64,000 bases of DNA, taken from Macrostomum hystrix (taxonomy: Eukaryota > Animalia > Platyhelminthes). The DNA lies in the NCBI GenBank assembly GCA_950097015.1, contig CATNEN010000007.1, positions 2,976,001 to 3,040,000 of the forward strand, in the 5' to 3' direction. This document shows, one piece after another, positions 55,993 to 64,000 of the stretch. Each line of letters opens with the position of its first letter. The first letter of the stretch is position 1. The notes beneath the pieces were generated by a model. The model had not been told where the DNA came from. It did not search any database and worked only from the letters and a program-made list of their open reading frames with translations. The translations under genes and the position numbers were made by a program.

Positions 55993-57963
55993 GGGCGAAG
56001 CATGAATTGTAAAGTGAAGTGCTATATGAGGGCGAGGGGAGTTGGTCTAACGCTGTGCCAGTTCTGGGAACGAGAGGTTGGCTATTTTGGAGCTTATCTA
56101 TCCCTTAGCATCGCTAGTAGGCTGCCACAGAGGTGGCCCTGGGCTGGCATGGTAGCCTTGCCTTCACAGAGAGCCTTGCATGCCTTTGGAACGATGAATG
56201 CGCAAGCTACAGCTATTTGTGTGTGCCTGCGTGTGATGCACTGCGCACAGCTGCTTTGCCCATTGCTGCGTATGGGACTTCACAGGGCCGGGTGTCGCCT
56301 GCAGTTTCTGCTCCCCATCGTGCGCTGCTCCCTGTCCAACGCGTTTGCTCGCTACTCGATTGCAAAGCGCAACACTCGCACGCACTGGCCAGCCCGTTGG
56401 ACGCCCCGTCTCTCCCTAATGGAAGATAAGCCATGGTAAGCCACAGTCCAGTGGGTGAATTTATGCCCCATCCCCGCCCAGAGCAGTCACTGGAGGGCTG
56501 CTGGTCGGTGGGTTTGGAGTAGGGGGACTCACTTCCGAAGTCACCCCTGGCCTGAAGGGAATGAGTAGAGTTTGAGATGAATTTATGTGCTGCATGGGTT
56601 CGCCTTGGCAAAGGACATAAAATACTCGAGCCGCGGCATCAGCTGAATGAGTACAGGAAAATTATACTCGCATTTTACGATGCTCGGTTATTTCATGACC
56701 TCGGCCAGACAGACACATGAAAGTGTTGACAAGATGCGAAATTTCACTATCTAATTAATGGCACTATGATCCTATAGCTAAAACCACACCAGATAGTCAA
56801 TGAGCATTTTCGCTGCATTGCTACAAATAACTCACTAAAAAAATTCTTTTGCCAATATTAGTAAACAGTATTATTTTTTTTTAATTAAAAAAAGTAATAA
56901 AATGCCTTAAATTATGAGCACAGAATGGCTAGGTAAATCCCGCGATATAAAAACAAGAATGAATGCTCGTGTAGAGACTCGATTGATTTGGCATCTAGTC
57001 TGAAAAGATGCTCCTTCAGTTTATCGAGGCATCGACTAGAATTGGTCTCTAGTTGTGGTAGAGGCTCTCGAGCTAAAATACACCGCTGTTGCAGCCCAGC
57101 TGATCATCTGAGGGGGTGGCCTCGGAAAATTTGATTAACTTTAGAATCCTATTACACCAAAATTGCACCATTATGTACGAGCATATCGTTGCCTCAATAA
57201 CCTAAAGGTAAAGCATTTGATTAAAAATACACGCAACAAGGCCATGAGGAACAAAAAGGCATTAGTAGAAAATTGTTGATATACAAAATAATATAAGCGA
57301 GTAGTGACCAAAGTGTAGCATAATTTTGAATCAATCGGTGCAGTTGAGAACTGGAGTGCTTGAAGCTTTGGCATTGGAAAAAAAACAGAAATGAGTTTTT
57401 ACATAATTTACAGCGATCTCGCTAATTAAAATACAGACGACTAAAGATGACACTCATAATCTGTTTTACTGTTCTTACAATTGCGCATGAAAGAAAATTG
57501 CAACTTTTGGTCAAGGCCAAATAAAGTACTAAAGTACCTTAGTCGTCCTTGAGGCTAATGCATACAGTATTGATTAGGCGCATGAAAGAGTTGGGAACGA
57601 CGTGAGGATTATTATTAGTCATATTGAGAGCCCCTTAAAAGTTAAGTTTTTTAATTAACAGTGGTAAAACAAATTTGGCAGAGATAAAATATTCCCCAGA
57701 AGCGCAACATAGAAAGACAATTCGTTGTGGCATGAAGCAGCGCACACATAGATGAATCGAATGATTTCAGCTTGCTCCGACCATTGCTTTCCAATCGGAA
57801 AGAGCCGAAGAAGCTTAAGAAGGCAGTAAGTACAACGGGGCTTCGAGCTCTTGTCGCGAAAGGCGCGAAAGGATATGGTCATGCGAAGCTGGTGAGATCT
57901 CTAGGCCTTTACAGTCTTGTACTCGACGTAGACACTTAAGACAGCGCGCATTCAGACCTTATG

Positions 57964-59955
57964 TTAATCGTTACTGCGTTCTACTTGCTTTACTAATGGA
58001 AGGAATTGGAACATCTTCAGTAGGCAAGCTGCCGAAACGTCATCGTGTTGAAGTCGTGGGGCACCAAGTTGTGGTGCTTCAGCATTGCAGCGCATGAGGA
58101 TGCTTCGGATCACTTCGTCTATCTTTGTGTGACGCTTGTCGTAGCGCTTCAGCATTTCTTTCAGCATCTCCCTAGCTTGCGAGATATCCTCAGTAGCTAA
58201 AGCGACAGCGTGAAGCTCTTCGAAGTCAGCGCTGCGTAGATCTTGGAGCACATCCTTCACTAAGTCGTCTGCAGTAGCTCGAACTTCATCAGCATCCGCG
58301 CAGAAATTCAGCCGCAGGAGATGCAAAAGGAGGGAGAAATTCAGATAGACTCGGCGCTCATGGAACGGTAGTGAGCAAGGAAAGCAGTCTCGACAGACAA
58401 TGCTTTCAGATGACGAGTCGCCTTCGCGAGCGAACCGAATGCTACCAACTGCGTCGTGGCTCATGCGACAGCTTATTCTCCAGAGAGTATCTTGGCTCTT
58501 CAGCTGGCTTCTGATGGCCTCTTTTATTTTAGTTTTTGTTAATCCTGCTGGAACCTTCAGACCACGATAAACTGAAACTGTCCGACTGTCAGACAATAAT
58601 TTCATGGCTTCTTCATCTTTATTCTCTCTCAGGTACGCCAGTACCCTCAGGCATATTTTAGCCGTGTTGGCAAAGCTTGGAATCTTGTCTATGTCATCGT
58701 AATCGCTCTCTGTTAGGGGTCTGTGAAGATTCATGATGTGCCTCAAATTCCGCTTGATAGCAATGTATGCATTGTGATATTCGTCAGCCGACTCCTTATC
58801 ACTAATCAGTGAGAATCCGAAGGGAAATAGTGCGAAAGGATGCAAAGTAAGATAGTCACTTCGCTCTAGTGGCTTCAGCTGGTCTCGAAATTCGCACAAA
58901 TGTCGATTAATATTTTTTATTACGCAAACAATGTGCTCTACTATCATTGATTTAGGAGACTGTTCCTTTTTAAAATACAGGACTGTATCACTGAGGAAGA
59001 AGTGCGGCATGCAGGAAGTATCATCGCCTGAGCTGTCAATAAAGCTAATCAGCATGTCGAGCGCTCTGATCAGCAGCCGAGGAAAATTATCTTGCAACCA
59101 GTCTTGGCTTGGAGTTTCCCTCAGCATGAAGAGAAGCAGTGACTTGGCGTGGTACGATTTGAGACCCAAGCTTTGATGCTCCTGGTTGCTGACCCCCAGC
59201 ACTTTCTTGACGATGAATTTGAGAATTATGTAGAACTGACCCTGCTCGATGGACAGTAAGCGTAGACAGATTCTCTCCAGAATGGAAGTGCTCACCCTGA
59301 GTTCCGTTCCCTCTCTGCTTGGTGTTCCTGCTCTAATTAGATGGCAGGTGCTCCACTTCTTGCCTGGCGATCGGGCTGCGATTCGAAGCTTTTCGGCGAT
59401 TCTCTTCGGAAAATATCTACAAGCTTCGTCGCTTTCGTCAACGATACTCAGTTTAGGATAGGCACAAGTGGCAAAGGCATACACAATGTCCATGCTGGGG
59501 GTCACTGGCGAGGCTTCGGTCGTCATTGCAGGCTGAGAAACTGAAAGGTTATTAAATATTTATTAATATAAGCCAGTGCGCCTCGAGAATGTTTACTTGT
59601 AGACTTACCAACGGACAAGTCTGTTACTTTTATGTGTCCCTTCTCGTAGTCAACCTTGTCTCTTTCAAGCACATCCGAGCATCTACAAAAATTATTTATG
59701 TGATATTTTCGTCCGGGCATAATTTCGGTGAAGTCGATGTCTGACTCCTGGCTGACGGATCCATCGGCTGAGCGCAGATTACAGCCCCAGCCGTCACCGA
59801 AGCTGCCCAAGATAAAGACAGTCTCTCTGTTAAAAAAGTTCCTATAAATCTCTTGGACAATGTCAGCAGCTGCTGTTTGCACTCGCGACCTTTCTCTCGT
59901 GAATCCAGCGGCAGTCATTCTTGTGCAGATCTCTTTCATGTCTGGCTTAGTTGAG
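57964..59955 (-). CDS. cGAS-like receptor / Mab-21 nucleotidyltransferase module (exons 59955-59609 or ATG 59939-59609, and 59540-57964)
   Basis: FILGSFGDG..SDIDF, MDIVYA, LRVSTSILE, ILKFIVKK, LKSYHAKSLLL, MPHFFL; 68-bp phase-1 intron G|GTAAGT..TTTCAG|TT joins the two track ORFs; ~300-aa extra C-terminal region. Confidence 0.88.
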
Positions 59956-62900
59956 CTGAAGTGACAAATGGAAGGAATTGGAACATCTTCAGGTTTTTAG
60001 AAAAGTATAGTCTGTTTTGCCAACTAATAACGTGATCCTATTCACCTATTCACCTATCCTATTCACCCCAAAGTTCGTTATGCAATCAGAGTCAGAGTCA
60101 AATTAATCATCAAAGCTGCAGACGTTCAGGCGGCTGCCTCCGACGCTGAGGGTAGCGCCTGGTCGGGCTGGCCGACATGTCAGCGGCTTCGGCGACCGAG
60201 GCATCCGGCGGCGCGTCGTTGCTGCCGTTGCCTACGCTTGGCTCGGTGGGCGGCAGCGGCGGCTTATCAGCGATTCTGGCCGGTGGCTCCAGGGTAGCAT
60301 CCGGCAGCGAGCTCGTCAGCAGCTGGTCAGTGTGCCGCCGATAGAGAGCGCCGCCGACCTCGACGTCGCAGTTGCGGGACCCGGGAGTCGCGCAGTAGAA
60401 TTCGGTCGCCGGCTTGGAACTCGCGCGCCTGCGGCTGTTGCTCCACCTGGTGTTCGTGGCGCTGCTGCATGTTGCTCACCAGCGATGGCATCAGCAGGTC
60501 GAGCCGACTGCGCAGTTTGCGGCCGATGAGCAGCTGGCTGGGAGCGTCGCCGGTGATTGAGTGCGGCGTGTTGCGGTAGGACATCAGCATCTGCTGCAGT
60601 GCTGCCGTCGAGTGCCCGCTCTTGAGGAGGTGTCGCTTGAGCACCTGCACGAATCTCTCCGCCTGGCCGTTCGTAGCAGGGTGGAACGGCGCGGAGAAGA
60701 TATGGCGGATTACGTTGCGCCTGGTGAACTCCGTGAACTCCGCGGAGGCGAACTGCGCACCGTTGTCAGAGACCAGCACTCGGGGGATGCCCAGTCTGGC
60801 GAAGACCTCGCGGAGACGGTCGATCCTGGCCGCAGACATCGTGCTGTGCACTTGGAAAACTTCCGGCCACTTGCTGAAGGCGTCTACGATCACCAGGTAG
60901 GTGCGGCCGTTAACCGGACCGGCGAAGTCCAGATGTAGCCGCGCCCACGGCTCTGACGGAAACGGCCACGGTTGCACCGGCGCCTTGGGTGGGTCAGCCT
61001 GGTTGAGGGCGCAGATCCGGCAGGACTTGACGGCCGCCTCCAGCTGCTTGTCCAATCCTGGCCACCAGACATAGCTGCGGGCCAGAGCTCGCATCCGGTT
61101 GATGCCTGGGTGCGCCTGGTGCAGCTCATCCACCACGCCTTGTCGCAGGGCCGTCGGCACGACGACGCGGGATCCCCACAGCACGCAGCCTTGCTCCACA
61201 CTCAGCTCGTCTGCCTCTCCAGCCACCGCGTTGACCTGCCCGAAGATCTTCGGCCATTCGAGTCTCAGCTGCGTCAGCCATTCCCGGCCCAGCAGCGCGA
61301 CGTCACTTTGATCGACCACCAGCAGCGTTAGCCACCGATCCTGGCCATTGTACTGAACGGCGACATCCGCCTGTCCGACGGGCCTGAAGCTCTCGCCGGT
61401 GTAGGTCCGTAGCACTGTAGAAGTCGGCGATAGTCTTAAACCTGGCAGGACCTCTCGCTGAATGCCCTTCGGGATGACGGTCAGGGCGGACCCAGTGTCC
61501 ACTTCGAAGCGACATGGCTTACCCTGCACCAGCAGCTCGACGACTAATCCCTTGCTAGATCCGCACTGCCGAACGCTGAAGAGGGGCTCCTGCAGCTCGG
61601 CCGGTTCCGGATCCACCTTGTGCAGCTTGGATGATTTGCACACCTTCCGAATGTGGCCAATTTTGCCGCAGTTGTGGCACCTTGCCTCGCGCAGCTTGCA
61701 CTGCTGTCGACTGTGAGCACCGCCGCAGCTCGCGCACGCGCCCGTGGCCGCAGCAGGCCGCGTTGCGCCGGCTGGAGCTCCAGCTGACTGGCAGGGGGCC
61801 TGCTTGTTGGTCTCCTTGAATGCTGGAGGTTTCTTGTGGAAACGCAGGTGGGCCACCGCTTCCGCTCGGTGCGCCATCTCCGATGAGGATCTCTCCGCCG
61901 CCTCTAGTGCGTCGAGTCTGGCGAGCAGCGTCTTGAAGTCTGGCTTTTCAATCTGCAGCAGCTTAGCGCGGTGCGTATCGCTGCGGAGACCGAATACCAA
62001 CTGGTCGCGCAGTCTTTCGTCCAGAGTGGTCCCGAATTCGCAGCGCTCTGATGCCGCTTTCAGGCCAGCGATGAAGTCAGCGAGGCTCTCACCGGGCTTC
62101 TGCACGCGCTGTTGAAATCGAAATCTGGCGGAGAGCATTGACGTCTTGGGCGCATAATACGCCTTTAGGGTATCAGCTAGCTCAGTGTAGGACTTGGAGA
62201 TCGCTGGTTTCGGCAGGCATAGATTCCGTAGAACCTTGTAGGCATCCTCTCCGATAGCGGTTACCAGCGTGGCGACCTTTGCCTCGTCTTGGACTTCTTT
62301 GCAGATGAAATACTGTTCGAGCCTCTCTAAGTAGATATCAATGTCAGAGTTAGCAGAGAGTTCTGGAATTCTTCCAGTTGTATCCCATCCTCGTCGCCAA
62401 TGTGAAATTATGAGTTCTGAGACGAGTAAGTTAGGAGTAGAAAACAAGCACGCGTTCATTAGCGTCCGCGCAGTCATGTTTATTGTACTCGTACGACTCA
62501 ATGGCTGACTCAGCATTGTTAGGAGATTAGGGGTGGGTGCTACAGCGCCTTGCATCAGTGAGAGAAAGTAAGCATTGGAAATCTAAAGACAGCACAGTGG
62601 GGTGACATGGGTGCACGTGAACTATAGCCATGCAGATAGTTAATAGCGAGTATTGAAATGACAATAAACTAGCTGTTATAGAGTGGCGCGCAAATAGTAC
62701 TTTTGCTAAGCTATCCGACAGTATTAAAATACAATGAAACGTTTAATCTCTTTCTATTTCGATCGGCCAAAATTATTTTCAACTTCGTCGACGCTTTCGC
62801 GGATAAAATTAGATACCGAATAAAGACTTACCCGAGCAGTCCATCAAGGGAGAGGGCTCTCCCCTTCGAAGCGGGAGAAATTTCTGGATCAAGCTCCTGA

Positions 62901-63778
62901 GCTAGCTCAGTGTAGCCAAGTTGCCGACAAATATCAGCAGCTTTAAGCCTCTGAATGTCGGTCACTTTATTTCGAAGGAGGAGAGCCGTTGAGCGGCGAT
63001 CATAGGCGCAGCATTGAGCCAGTGGGCAGACCGCCTGAGCGTCGAACTGGGCGTCAATCTCAAGGTCCACAACCGCAACCGCGCCCGCTTTTAGCAGCAA
63101 TGAAACCACCTGATCGTGGCCATTGGCAGCTGTGAGAGATAGAGCCGTCTGGCCATCCCTGCAGCGCGTGTTGATTTTCGCATCGCGCTGGATCAGCCTT
63201 TCAACGATTTTAAAAAATCCACCTTCGGAAGCCGCCATAAGAGGAGTGTGTCCATCCTCGCGAGCCAGCTCTAGGTCAGCGTTGCTCTCCGGTAAGAGAA
63301 GAATGTCCACAACTTCTAGAAAGTTCAACTTACACGCCACCCAGAGGCAGGATTCACCATTGTTCCTGGTCTTTTTGCAATCGCAATTCACGCCGTCACT
63401 GAGCAACAGTTTCACAATCTGATGAAATCCGTAGGAAGCTGCGGTCCACAATGGCGTCACGCCTCGCGAGTCGGCGATGTTCGGATCAGCACCGCCCTTT
63501 AGAAGTGTCTGAATCACCTCAATGTGGCCGTTAGCTGCCGCGATCCAGAGCCCAGTAACTCCGCCGTTATTCAGTCGAGCGTCAAGATTAGCCTTGAATT
63601 CAATCAGAACAAGTAGACTATCCAGGCTAACGTTTCTAGAGGCGAACCAAACTGCCGTTTCACCGTTCTTGTTTGAATAGTTTTTGTCTGCACCATTCTT
63701 CAGCAGTTTTCGTAGCTCCGTGGCGTCGTTATTCAAAGCGCATTTTAGCAGCCTCTCGCCTTCGTCTGATGATGCCAT
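57964..63778 (-). CDS. Predicted spliced ankyrin-repeat + cGAS-like NTase fusion, ~956 aa (exons 63778-62832, 59955-59609, 59540-57964)
   Basis: The ankyrin ORF ends at GG|GTAAGT (its stop lies inside the donor consensus). Acceptor TTCCAATTCCTTCCATTTGTCACTTCAG|C at 59956 is phase 2, giving LLG-STKPD-MKEIC in frame; total 2871 nt. Confidence 0.7.
57995..59992. repeat. Perfect 26-bp direct repeat AATGGAAGGAATTGGAACATCTTCAG at 57995-58020 and 59967-59992
   Basis: Both copies read directly, 1972 bp apart, flanking the NTase module. Confidence 0.95.
60327..62555 (-). CDS. Gag-protease-integrase ORF with in-frame RT/RNase H deletion (742 aa as called)
   Basis: Protease end LEWPKIFGQVNAVAGEA is joined directly to DELSVEQGCVLWGSRVVVP (pre-integrase region). 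Confidence 0.8.
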   Translation of the reverse strand: MQGAVAPTPNLLTMLSQPLSRTSTINMTARTLMNACLFSTPNLLVSELIISHWRRGWDTTGRIPELSANSDIDIYLERLEQYFICKEVQDEAKVATLVTAIGEDAYKVLRNLCLPKPAISKSYTELADTLKAYYAPKTSMLSARFRFQQRVQKPGESLADFIAGLKAASERCEFGTTLDERLRDQLVFGLRSDTHRAKLLQIEKPDFKTLLARLDALEAAERSSSEMAHRAEAVAHLRFHKKPPAFKETNKQAPCQSAGAPAGATRPAAATGACASCGGAHSRQQCKLREARCHNCGKIGHIRKVCKSSKLHKVDPEPAELQEPLFSVRQCGSSKGLVVELLVQGKPCRFEVDTGSALTVIPKGIQREVLPGLRLSPTSTVLRTYTGESFRPVGQADVAVQYNGQDRWLTLLVVDQSDVALLGREWLTQLRLEWPKIFGQVNAVAGEADELSVEQGCVLWGSRVVVPTALRQGVVDELHQAHPGINRMRALARSYVWWPGLDKQLEAAVKSCRICALNQADPPKAPVQPWPFPSEPWARLHLDFAGPVNGRTYLVIVDAFSKWPEVFQVHSTMSAARIDRLREVFARLGIPRVLVSDNGAQFASAEFTEFTRRNVIRHIFSAPFHPATNGQAERFVQVLKRHLLKSGHSTAALQQMLMSYRNTPHSITGDAPSQLLIGRKLRSRLDLLMPSLVSNMQQRHEHQVEQQPQAREFQAGDRILLRDSRVPQLRRRGRRRSLSAAH
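62382..62399 (-). other. 18-nt primer binding site TGGCGACGAGGATGGGAT, likely tRNA-Ser(GCT)
   Basis: Starts 1 nt after the LTR-terminal CA; its reverse complement ATCCCATCCTCGTCGCCA matches my recollection of the eukaryotic tRNA-Ser(GCT) 3' end. Confidence 0.8.
62828..63778 (-). CDS. Ankyrin-repeat ORF (7-8 repeats, 316 aa unspliced); probably exon 1 of the ANK-cGLR gene
   Basis: GETAVWFAS, GVTGLWIAAANGH, GVTPLWTAASYG, GHTPLMAASEGG, GQTALSLTAANGH; Kozak GACATGG at 63778. Confidence 0.9.
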   Translation of the reverse strand: MASSDEGERLLKCALNNDATELRKLLKNGADKNYSNKNGETAVWFASRNVSLDSLLVLIEFKANLDARLNNGGVTGLWIAAANGHIEVIQTLLKGGADPNIADSRGVTPLWTAASYGFHQIVKLLLSDGVNCDCKKTRNNGESCLWVACKLNFLEVVDILLLPESNADLELAREDGHTPLMAASEGGFFKIVERLIQRDAKINTRCRDGQTALSLTAANGHDQVVSLLLKAGAVAVVDLEIDAQFDAQAVCPLAQCCAYDRRSTALLLRNKVTDIQRLKAADICRQLGYTELAQELDPEISPASKGRALSLDGLLG

Positions 63779-64000
63779 GTCAGGCAGACATGTTGAACTT
63801 AAACTGGACAGCTTATTCGTCACTACCTATGTAGTGCGGCTTGATAAAGCAATACTGGCTTAAACTGGGCTTAATAGACACTTATCATGATATCAGCACT
63901 ACTTTTAGTGTGTCTTAAAATTATTAGAAAATGGAATTATGTATACAGCTGGCTTGTACATTCAGGAACAATAGAGAATGGAGAGTGTACAGACAGCTCC

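Follow-up and report, generated by a model that had tools for sequence, protein, structure and literature searches.

The window, a stretch of 64,000 nucleotides from the flatworm Macrostomum hystrix (contig CATNEN010000007.1, positions 2,976,001 to 3,040,000), contains three open reading frames (ORFs) on its minus strand that, with a probability of roughly 85 %, form one expressed three-exon gene. The predicted product is a protein of 956 amino acids in which an array of ankyrin (ANK) repeats is joined to a cGAS-like receptor (cGLR) nucleotidyltransferase (NTase) and a helical tail. The first intron carries a retrotransposon insertion, which separates the ankyrin frame from the remainder of the gene. 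The gene model is as follows.

63778-62832, minus strand: coding part of exon 1, with the ATG at 63778 and ending in phase 2 (..CTC GG)
62831-59956, minus strand: intron 1, 2876 nt, GT..AG
59955-59609, minus strand: exon 2, NTase core, ending in phase 1
59608-59541, minus strand: intron 2, 68 nt, GT..AG, phase 1
59540-57964, minus strand: exon 3, with the stop codon at 57966-57964

The TAA that closes the ankyrin ORF (62830-62828) lies inside a consensus donor, CTC GG/GTAAGT, with exon 1 ending at 62832, and the acceptor of intron 1 is formed by a pyrimidine-rich stretch leading to TTCAG/C at 59956/59955. Across this intron GG and C make up a Gly codon, after which the frame continues with S-T-K-P-D-M into an NTase ORF of 138 amino acids. 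Intron 2 joins GTT G/.. to ../TT TCT CAG and links the 138-amino-acid ORF with one of 520 amino acids. An earlier note on this DNA, made from the sequence alone, had named the donor, acceptor, matching phases and coordinates of intron 1, a second matched intron, the stop at 57964 and a product of about 956 amino acids. All of these proved correct in the sequence, the exon sum of 947+347+1574 = 2868 nt giving 956 codons before the stop. An in-frame TAG is located at 63829-63827, 16 codons upstream of the ATG at 63778, and the 5' untranslated region extends past 63850, as far as the contigs reach. An upstream ORF of three codons, ATG TCT GCC TGA (63789-63800), ends 2 nt before the ATG at 63778.

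Both introns were found spliced out in contigs assembled from sequencing runs. Four runs of one organism, from a single study, carry 56–60 % of the locus words, and in three of the runs (X2, X3 and X4) contigs contain both joints, 59955/62832 with 2876 nt skipped and 59540/59609 with 68 nt skipped. Each joint shows CT..AC ends on the plus strand, corresponding to GT..AG on the gene strand. A single contig of 1506 nt reaches past 63850 at one end, covers the ANK exon and exon 2, and includes 94 nt of exon 3 at the other, with 0–2 mismatches. The 62832->59955 junction, which the earlier note had proposed as a check, is therefore present in contigs of three runs, and its claim that three unrelated-looking ORFs belong to one spliced gene is borne out by these joints. 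By depth arithmetic, X2, X3 and X4 had zero cover over intron sequence that is unique (59956-60065 and 59541-59608), and the binned depths match the expectation for exon bases and for transposon bases from other copies alone. Exon 2 is single copy in the 220-Mb assembly, so the joined form cannot be a genomic retrocopy. Given the exact joints, the uncovered unique intron and the single-copy exon 2, the X2–X4 contigs were taken as cDNA-derived, and we infer that they originate from RNA. A further run, X1, a wastewater metatranscriptome, matched in the transposon part alone and none of its matches was informative on the gene.

The domain content was determined separately for the three exons. For exon 1 the Pfam matches were Ank_2 (173 bits) and Ank (120 bits), in five separate stretches, and by eye from the translation the array consists of seven tandem 33-residue repeats and a C-terminal cap. 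Exon 2 alone gave a sub-threshold nucleotidyltransferase palm match and nothing else in Pfam, while exon 3 matched Mab-21_C at 30.8 bits (cut-off 24.1), with the helical half at approximately 58957-59187. The functional positions of the NTase and the tail are the following.

59807-59802, minus strand: GS activation-loop motif, exon 2
59741-59733, minus strand: first two catalytic acids, D-I-D, exon 2
59490-59488, minus strand: third catalytic Asp, in the motif SMDIVYAF, exon 3
57967-58845, minus strand: helical tail of ~290 amino acids, exon 3

This agrees with the order described in the earlier note, namely 7–8 ANK repeats, a Mab-21/cGLR part and a tail of about 300 amino acids. Its further description of the protein as NLR-like did not hold beyond analogy: neither the exon pieces nor nine homologues contained a NACHT or NB-ARC Pfam domain, and the predicted protein is without the NLR/STAND hallmark.

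Li et al. (2023, PMC9980059) recognize cGLRs by an active-site motif, by homology over both lobes and by predicted structural homology to cGAS, cGLRs or CD-NTases. The motif comprises a G[S/G] activation loop, [DE]h[DE], X50-90 and [DE], and in the window gene it is complete, reading LGS-x20-DID-x58-D as counted on the exon pieces; the residue preceding GS is L, as against Q/T in a stricter form of the motif. A family profile of 46 sequences, mollusc and brachiopod sequences included, was compared with the PDB and matched cGLR1 (8gjy) at E 1.5e-36 over profile positions 64-342, cGAS at about 1e-22 to 1e-25 (E 2e-25 over positions 48-331), MB21D2 at 5e-21 and MAB21L1 at 2e-14. Exon 3 alone gave a single PDB match, again 8gjy cGLR1, at E 0.008. 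The homology covers both lobes, that is the NTase core and the C-terminal helix bundle.

Structural homology was assessed on a model of residues 315-936 of P0001, the closest Macrostomum lignano homologue. The AlphaFold2 model had a predicted local distance difference test score (pLDDT) of 88 and a predicted template modelling score of 0.89. The comparison with cGAS by Foldseek that the earlier note had called for returned, on this homologue, cGAS or Cv-cGLR1 throughout the top 50, with probability 1.0. VIA-align Z scores of the same model were highest for Cv-cGLR1 (13.6) and Sp-cGLR1 (12.4), followed by MB21D2 (11.8), cGAS (11.8) and MAB21L1 (11.5), and were lower for MiD49 (9.7), bacterial CD-NTases (8–10) and OAS1 (8.1). 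By the three bioinformatic criteria of motif, two-lobe homology and modelled structure the gene is classed as a cGLR, with enzymatic activity predicted.

The tail is kept across the family (alignment A2) and packs against the NTase in the predicted P0001 model. Folded alone from the window sequence, it was mostly helical with two small hairpins (pLDDT 81). Pfam gave no TPR match in the tail; its VIA-align Z scores of 7.5–9 against the TPRs of KLC1, APC/C and Tom70 lie within the noise range of helical repeats. Foldseek of the tail alone returned nothing below E 0.1 (best E 0.15), and an atlas shape search returned TPR-type neighbours with template modelling scores below 0.5. An atlas feature search of the tail, and of the STING-like ORF described below, gave uninformative scores of 0.76–0.77. 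The models weakly suggest a helical domain that is loosely TPR-like.

To place the gene among its relatives, 1.84 billion cluster representatives were searched with HMMER, giving 120 matching clusters. The ten clusters for which sources were looked up were mostly from M. lignano, and the two most distant were from bivalves and brachiopods. The best match was P0001 (PAA61004.1, 936 amino acids), which is collinear with the three exon pieces.

P0001 residues 1-298: exon 1, 63 % identity
P0001 residues 303-422: exon 2, 60 % identity
P0001 residues 428-931: exon 3, 60 % identity

Over the position of intron 2, P0001 reads ..SVVSQPAMTT... Seven of the nine scanned homologues had ANK repeats together with a Mab-21_C match, at least a weak one. 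At 90 % identity, PAA45980.1 (P0123) clusters with P0001.

It has been reported that 87 % of cGLRs are without an added domain and that some of the others carry a TPR or ANK fusion, the ankyrin repeats being proposed to serve in protein or ligand interaction (Li et al. 2023, PMC9980059, Fig. 1C, 4C, S2A). In the same study most platyhelminths were without a cGLR beyond Mab21-like proteins, and M. lignano PAA45980.1 is entered in Table S2 with three Ank_2 domains. The novelty of the fusion, which the earlier note had left to be established, was thus not sustained: the ANK-cGLR architecture was already catalogued in 2023 in the sister species, and the window gene is a member of that family from a new species. 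The advance is accordingly incremental. Five M. lignano proteins were also cloned for the biochemical screen of that study (Table S3, samples 89-93). Sample 90 is PAA45980.1, cloned from ..RERSRVQTAAAD.. with the ANK array excluded, and the nucleic acids offered to the ANK-less M. lignano constructs were poly I:C and ISD45 double-stranded DNA (dsDNA) (Li et al. 2023, PMC9980059).

A search of the genome with the exon-3 protein identified at least 82 family places among 163 first-look candidates, many of them clustered on contigs C1, C3 and C18. Internal stops were found in three of the 82 paralog matches. Exon arrangement was then compared in a sample of 23 genes among the best-scoring paralogs, taken from 20 of the best loci, the tandem neighbour and one locus with a long open frame, by tblastn with the three exon pieces. 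ANK, exon-2-like and exon-3-like parts followed one another on one strand in 23/23. Together with the collinear M. lignano protein, this answers the question of ANK+Mab-21 paralogs and orthologs raised in the earlier note. In the sample of 23 from at least 82 places, ANK-cGLR fusion is the family rule in this genome at the level of sequence. The length of the ANK array varies widely across the paralogs and the M. lignano homologues. The GS motif and three acids are retained in 22 of the 23 despite an overall identity of ~30 %, and the GS/DID/D residues are nearly invariant in the 46-sequence alignment. The sole sampled paralog with a broken dyad is L031 (G000:C2:6144714-6152926), whose exon-2-like part reads D-I-G in place of D-x-D; from its sequence it may be an inactive family member.

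The tandem paralog (L014:1403-4447, minus strand, equal to G000:C7:3041403-3044447) lies 1.6 kb upstream of the gene, beyond the window end, and is 51 % identical in exon 3 and 59 % identical in ANK. It has the same three exons with the same intron positions and phases, and its intron 1 is ~85 nt long and free of transposon. On the same contig, L016:3471-6317 (plus strand, G000:C7:10397470-10400316) is an uninterrupted, intronless ORF of 948 amino acids, ordered as a hydrophobic N-terminus, ANK repeats, NTase core, Mab-21 half and tail; the hydrophobic segment is a possible membrane anchor. An ORF with reverse transcriptase (RT), RNase H and integrase of a long terminal repeat (LTR) element lies directly upstream of this member (L016:11-2518). 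ANK matches on the opposite strand were confined to one head-to-head pair. This pair, at L018 (G000:C1:23580352-23588363), has its ANK exons ~130 nt apart and may be a divergent pair sharing a promoter region.

Compared with known systems, the gene is closest to the M. lignano Mlig022265 proteins (PAA61004.1 and PAA45980.1; 936 amino acids), with which it shares the order of ANK, NTase core, Mab-21_C and helical tail and the same GS/DID/D motif. It differs in belonging to another species with a much smaller genome (220 Mb), in the intron-1 retrotransposon, in the last ~17 residues of the protein, which lie at a locus-specific 26-nt duplication, and in the presence of the 51 %-identical tandem twin. 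The ANK-cGLRs of Stylophora pistillata and other animals (PMC9980059) likewise combine a cGLR NTase with ankyrin repeats, but in corals they are few genes among many unfused ones, whereas here all 23 sampled members are fused to ANK and carry the helical tail. Cv-cGLR1 (8GJW), Sp-cGLR1 (8GJY), human and mouse cGAS and human MB21D2 (7LT1) share the bilobed NTase with helix bundle and the catalytic motif, but are without an ANK array or the ~290-residue tail and are only 12–17 % identical; the ligands of Cv-cGLR1, Sp-cGLR1 and cGAS are dsDNA or double-stranded RNA (dsRNA). MAB21L1 (5EOG) and MiD49 (4WOY) belong to the same fold superfamily and are without a functional active site (PMC9980059), whereas the window gene keeps its active site.

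A candidate receptor for a nucleotide product was found elsewhere in the genome. The ORF L037:1000-2010 (minus strand, G000:C2:9104029-9105038) weakly resembles STING_LBD, and all 30 of its weak PDB matches were STING proteins. It carries AFAWNFAFTFLRLILP, the characteristic start of the ligand-binding domain. The ORF may encode a flatworm STING, as judged from sequence, and by analogy a cGLR–STING axis in this genome is plausible. A plausible splice acceptor precedes the ORF, and one hydrophobic segment lies ~1.2 kb upstream.

As a hypothesis, we assign the sensing role to the ANK array. This is favoured by its universal retention, by its variation in length, which is as expected of a recognition module, and by the silence of the ANK-less constructs with poly I:C and dsDNA. 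In the mechanism proposed by analogy with known cGLRs, the enzyme would be inactive at rest, and the ANK array, perhaps together with the helical tail, would bind a non-nucleic-acid ligand or host partner. Binding would license the NTase to produce a cyclic di- or oligonucleotide, and a STING-like protein of divergent sequence, or else a different receptor, would detect this signal. We rate the complete chain at a little short of even odds. A wider proposal, which we regard as tentative and on balance unlikely, is that macrostomids have converted their whole set of cGLRs, which numbers at least 82 genes here, into ANK-NTase-tail receptors whose variable ANK arrays would directly recognize non-nucleic-acid ligands such as pathogen or modified host proteins, forming a germline-diversified, NLR-like system with a nucleotide second-messenger output. 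If true, direct ANK recognition of non-nucleic-acid ligands would explain why the ANK-less enzymes are silent with dsRNA and dsDNA.

Several points weigh against these interpretations. The run type of X2–X4 is not on record, and as all derive from one organism in one study they amount to one independent source. The structure was modelled on the 60 %-identical homologue P0001:315-936 and not on the joined window protein. The STING-like ORF, at 25 bits, is below the 27-bit Pfam cut-off for STING_LBD, and it had no homologue by word search and nothing in the atlas. None of the five M. lignano members, the closest homologue included, was flagged among the 15 actives of the published screen (PMC9980059), and the family could accordingly be pseudoenzymes or could need another trigger. 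Finally, the NTase half is basic, with an isoelectric point (pI) of 8.6 for the exon-3 NTase part of the window gene and 8.8 for P0001 315-660. A high pI was linked with dsDNA- and dsRNA-sensing cGLRs by Li et al. (2023, PMC9980059), and this association would point to nucleic-acid rather than protein sensing.

The last point is the basis of an alternative for the same gene, in which the NTase senses nucleic acid and the ANK array and tail act only in localization, oligomerization or partner docking. The ligands known for cGLRs are all nucleic acids (Li et al. 2023, PMC9980059), which agrees with this account; however, none of the five ANK-less M. lignano constructs carries the active flag after incubation with poly I:C or ISD45 dsDNA, and the retention of ANK in every sampled member with very different repeat numbers is easier to reconcile with a recognition module than with an unvarying adaptor. 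We consider nucleic-acid sensing improbable, although it deserves weight. The family might instead consist of catalytically silent scaffolds or have a non-immune role, like MAB21L1 or MiD49/51, with the fold kept for binding. No family member has a demonstrated product, both MAB21L1 (Z 11.5) and MiD49 (Z 9.7) are among the structural neighbours, and STING is marginally detectable at best. A scaffold would have no need of the GS motif and three acids, yet these are kept in the window gene and in nearly all sampled paralogs at low overall identity, and for Mab21L1/2/3, by comparison, no functional active site is predicted (Li et al. 2023, PMC9980059). Silent scaffolding or a non-immune role is on this evidence distinctly unlikely. 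The last alternative holds that there are two genes, one for ANK and one for the NTase, with the joined contigs arising as assembly chimeras or from rare read-through. The ORFs are indeed separate, have their own start codons and are divided by 2.9 kb that include a transposon, but the joints are exact GT..AG joints that three runs carry, they share a contig with the joint of the 68-nt intron, and the reading frame is preserved across them. The same architecture is present in 23/23 paralogs, one of which is an uninterrupted ORF, and one M. lignano protein is collinear with all exons. The chimera or separate-gene reading was rejected on these grounds as extremely improbable.

A single ANK-cGLR gene is therefore the preferred model for the locus. 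ORF-based or naive gene calls would report three products in its place, namely an ANK protein, the polyprotein of a transposon and an NTase, and the present evidence fixes the model. As Macrostomum is compact and tractable in the laboratory, and ANK is present in every sampled member, it is a good place to ask what ANK arrays sense.

The claim of the earlier note that the gene is spliced across a retroelement was confirmed by the content of intron 1, which holds an LTR and an ORF for gag, protease and integrase. Unique sequence accounts for ~221 nt of the intron (62721-62831 and 59956-60065), and the remainder is the retrotransposon insertion, with the following parts.

62401-62720, minus strand: 5' LTR, TG...CA, ~320 nt; contigs of >100 depth match 62400-62720 exactly and then diverge
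~62384-62399, minus strand: TGG-initiated motif next to the LTR, a putative primer-binding site (PBS)
60327-62555, minus strand: element open frame of 742 amino acids, with gag, zinc knuckle, aspartic protease and integrase
60066-60326, minus strand: 3' internal remainder of the element, cut at 60066

Pfam matches of the 742-amino-acid ORF were Integrase_H2C2 (56 bits) and rve (50 bits), with weaker matches to PNMA/gag, RVP and zf-CCHC. No RT was found in the Pfam scan of this ORF; RT and RNase H are missing, with the breakpoint near 61207-61212, and contigs from other copies of the element diverge at 61207/61212. A contig of another copy continues from 60066 through 24 more nt, including a purine run (polypurine tract), to 62720, the LTR start. 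The copy in intron 1 has lost both these 24 nt, with their polypurine tract, and the 3' LTR, and a repeat search within 57900-63900 found no second LTR copy. The insert thus falls short of an intact LTR retrotransposon, which has two LTRs, a PBS, a polypurine tract, gag and protease, RT, RNase H and integrase. As it has neither RT/RNase H nor a 3' LTR, it is a dead fragment. Ty3/gypsy-type elements share with it the TG..CA LTR, PBS-like motif, gag, zinc knuckle, protease and H2C2 integrase with rve, but differ in having the RT/RNase H and 3' LTR that it lacks; its placement in the Ty3/gypsy superfamily is tentative and made from these sequence features, RT being lacking. The insert is in sense orientation relative to the host gene and is still removed cleanly by splicing. 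Since intron 1 of the tandem paralog is short and transposon-free, the transposon is a secondary insertion into an old intron. The retroelement contributes nothing to the protein and is carried along as a passenger. Contigs of the X1 wastewater run were 90–99 % identical to parts of the retrotransposon within 60247-62332, and the sample seems to have contained similar elements or a related flatworm.

A perfect direct repeat of 26 nt brackets exons 2 and 3, and extends to 29 nt with one mismatch.

59967-59992, minus strand: copy A, 26 nt, perfect, 11 nt upstream of the intron-1 acceptor
57995-58020, minus strand: copy B, 26 nt, perfect, in the last ~17 codons of exon 3

Copy B coincides with the point where the protein likeness to the M. 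lignano homologue and the tandem paralog ends, and an X2 contig has 14 nt of deletions inside it. A dispersed element was ruled out as the source, as the 220-Mb genome contains just two copies of a 25-mer of the repeat, both at this locus. The repeat possibly derives from a local duplication or a template switch.

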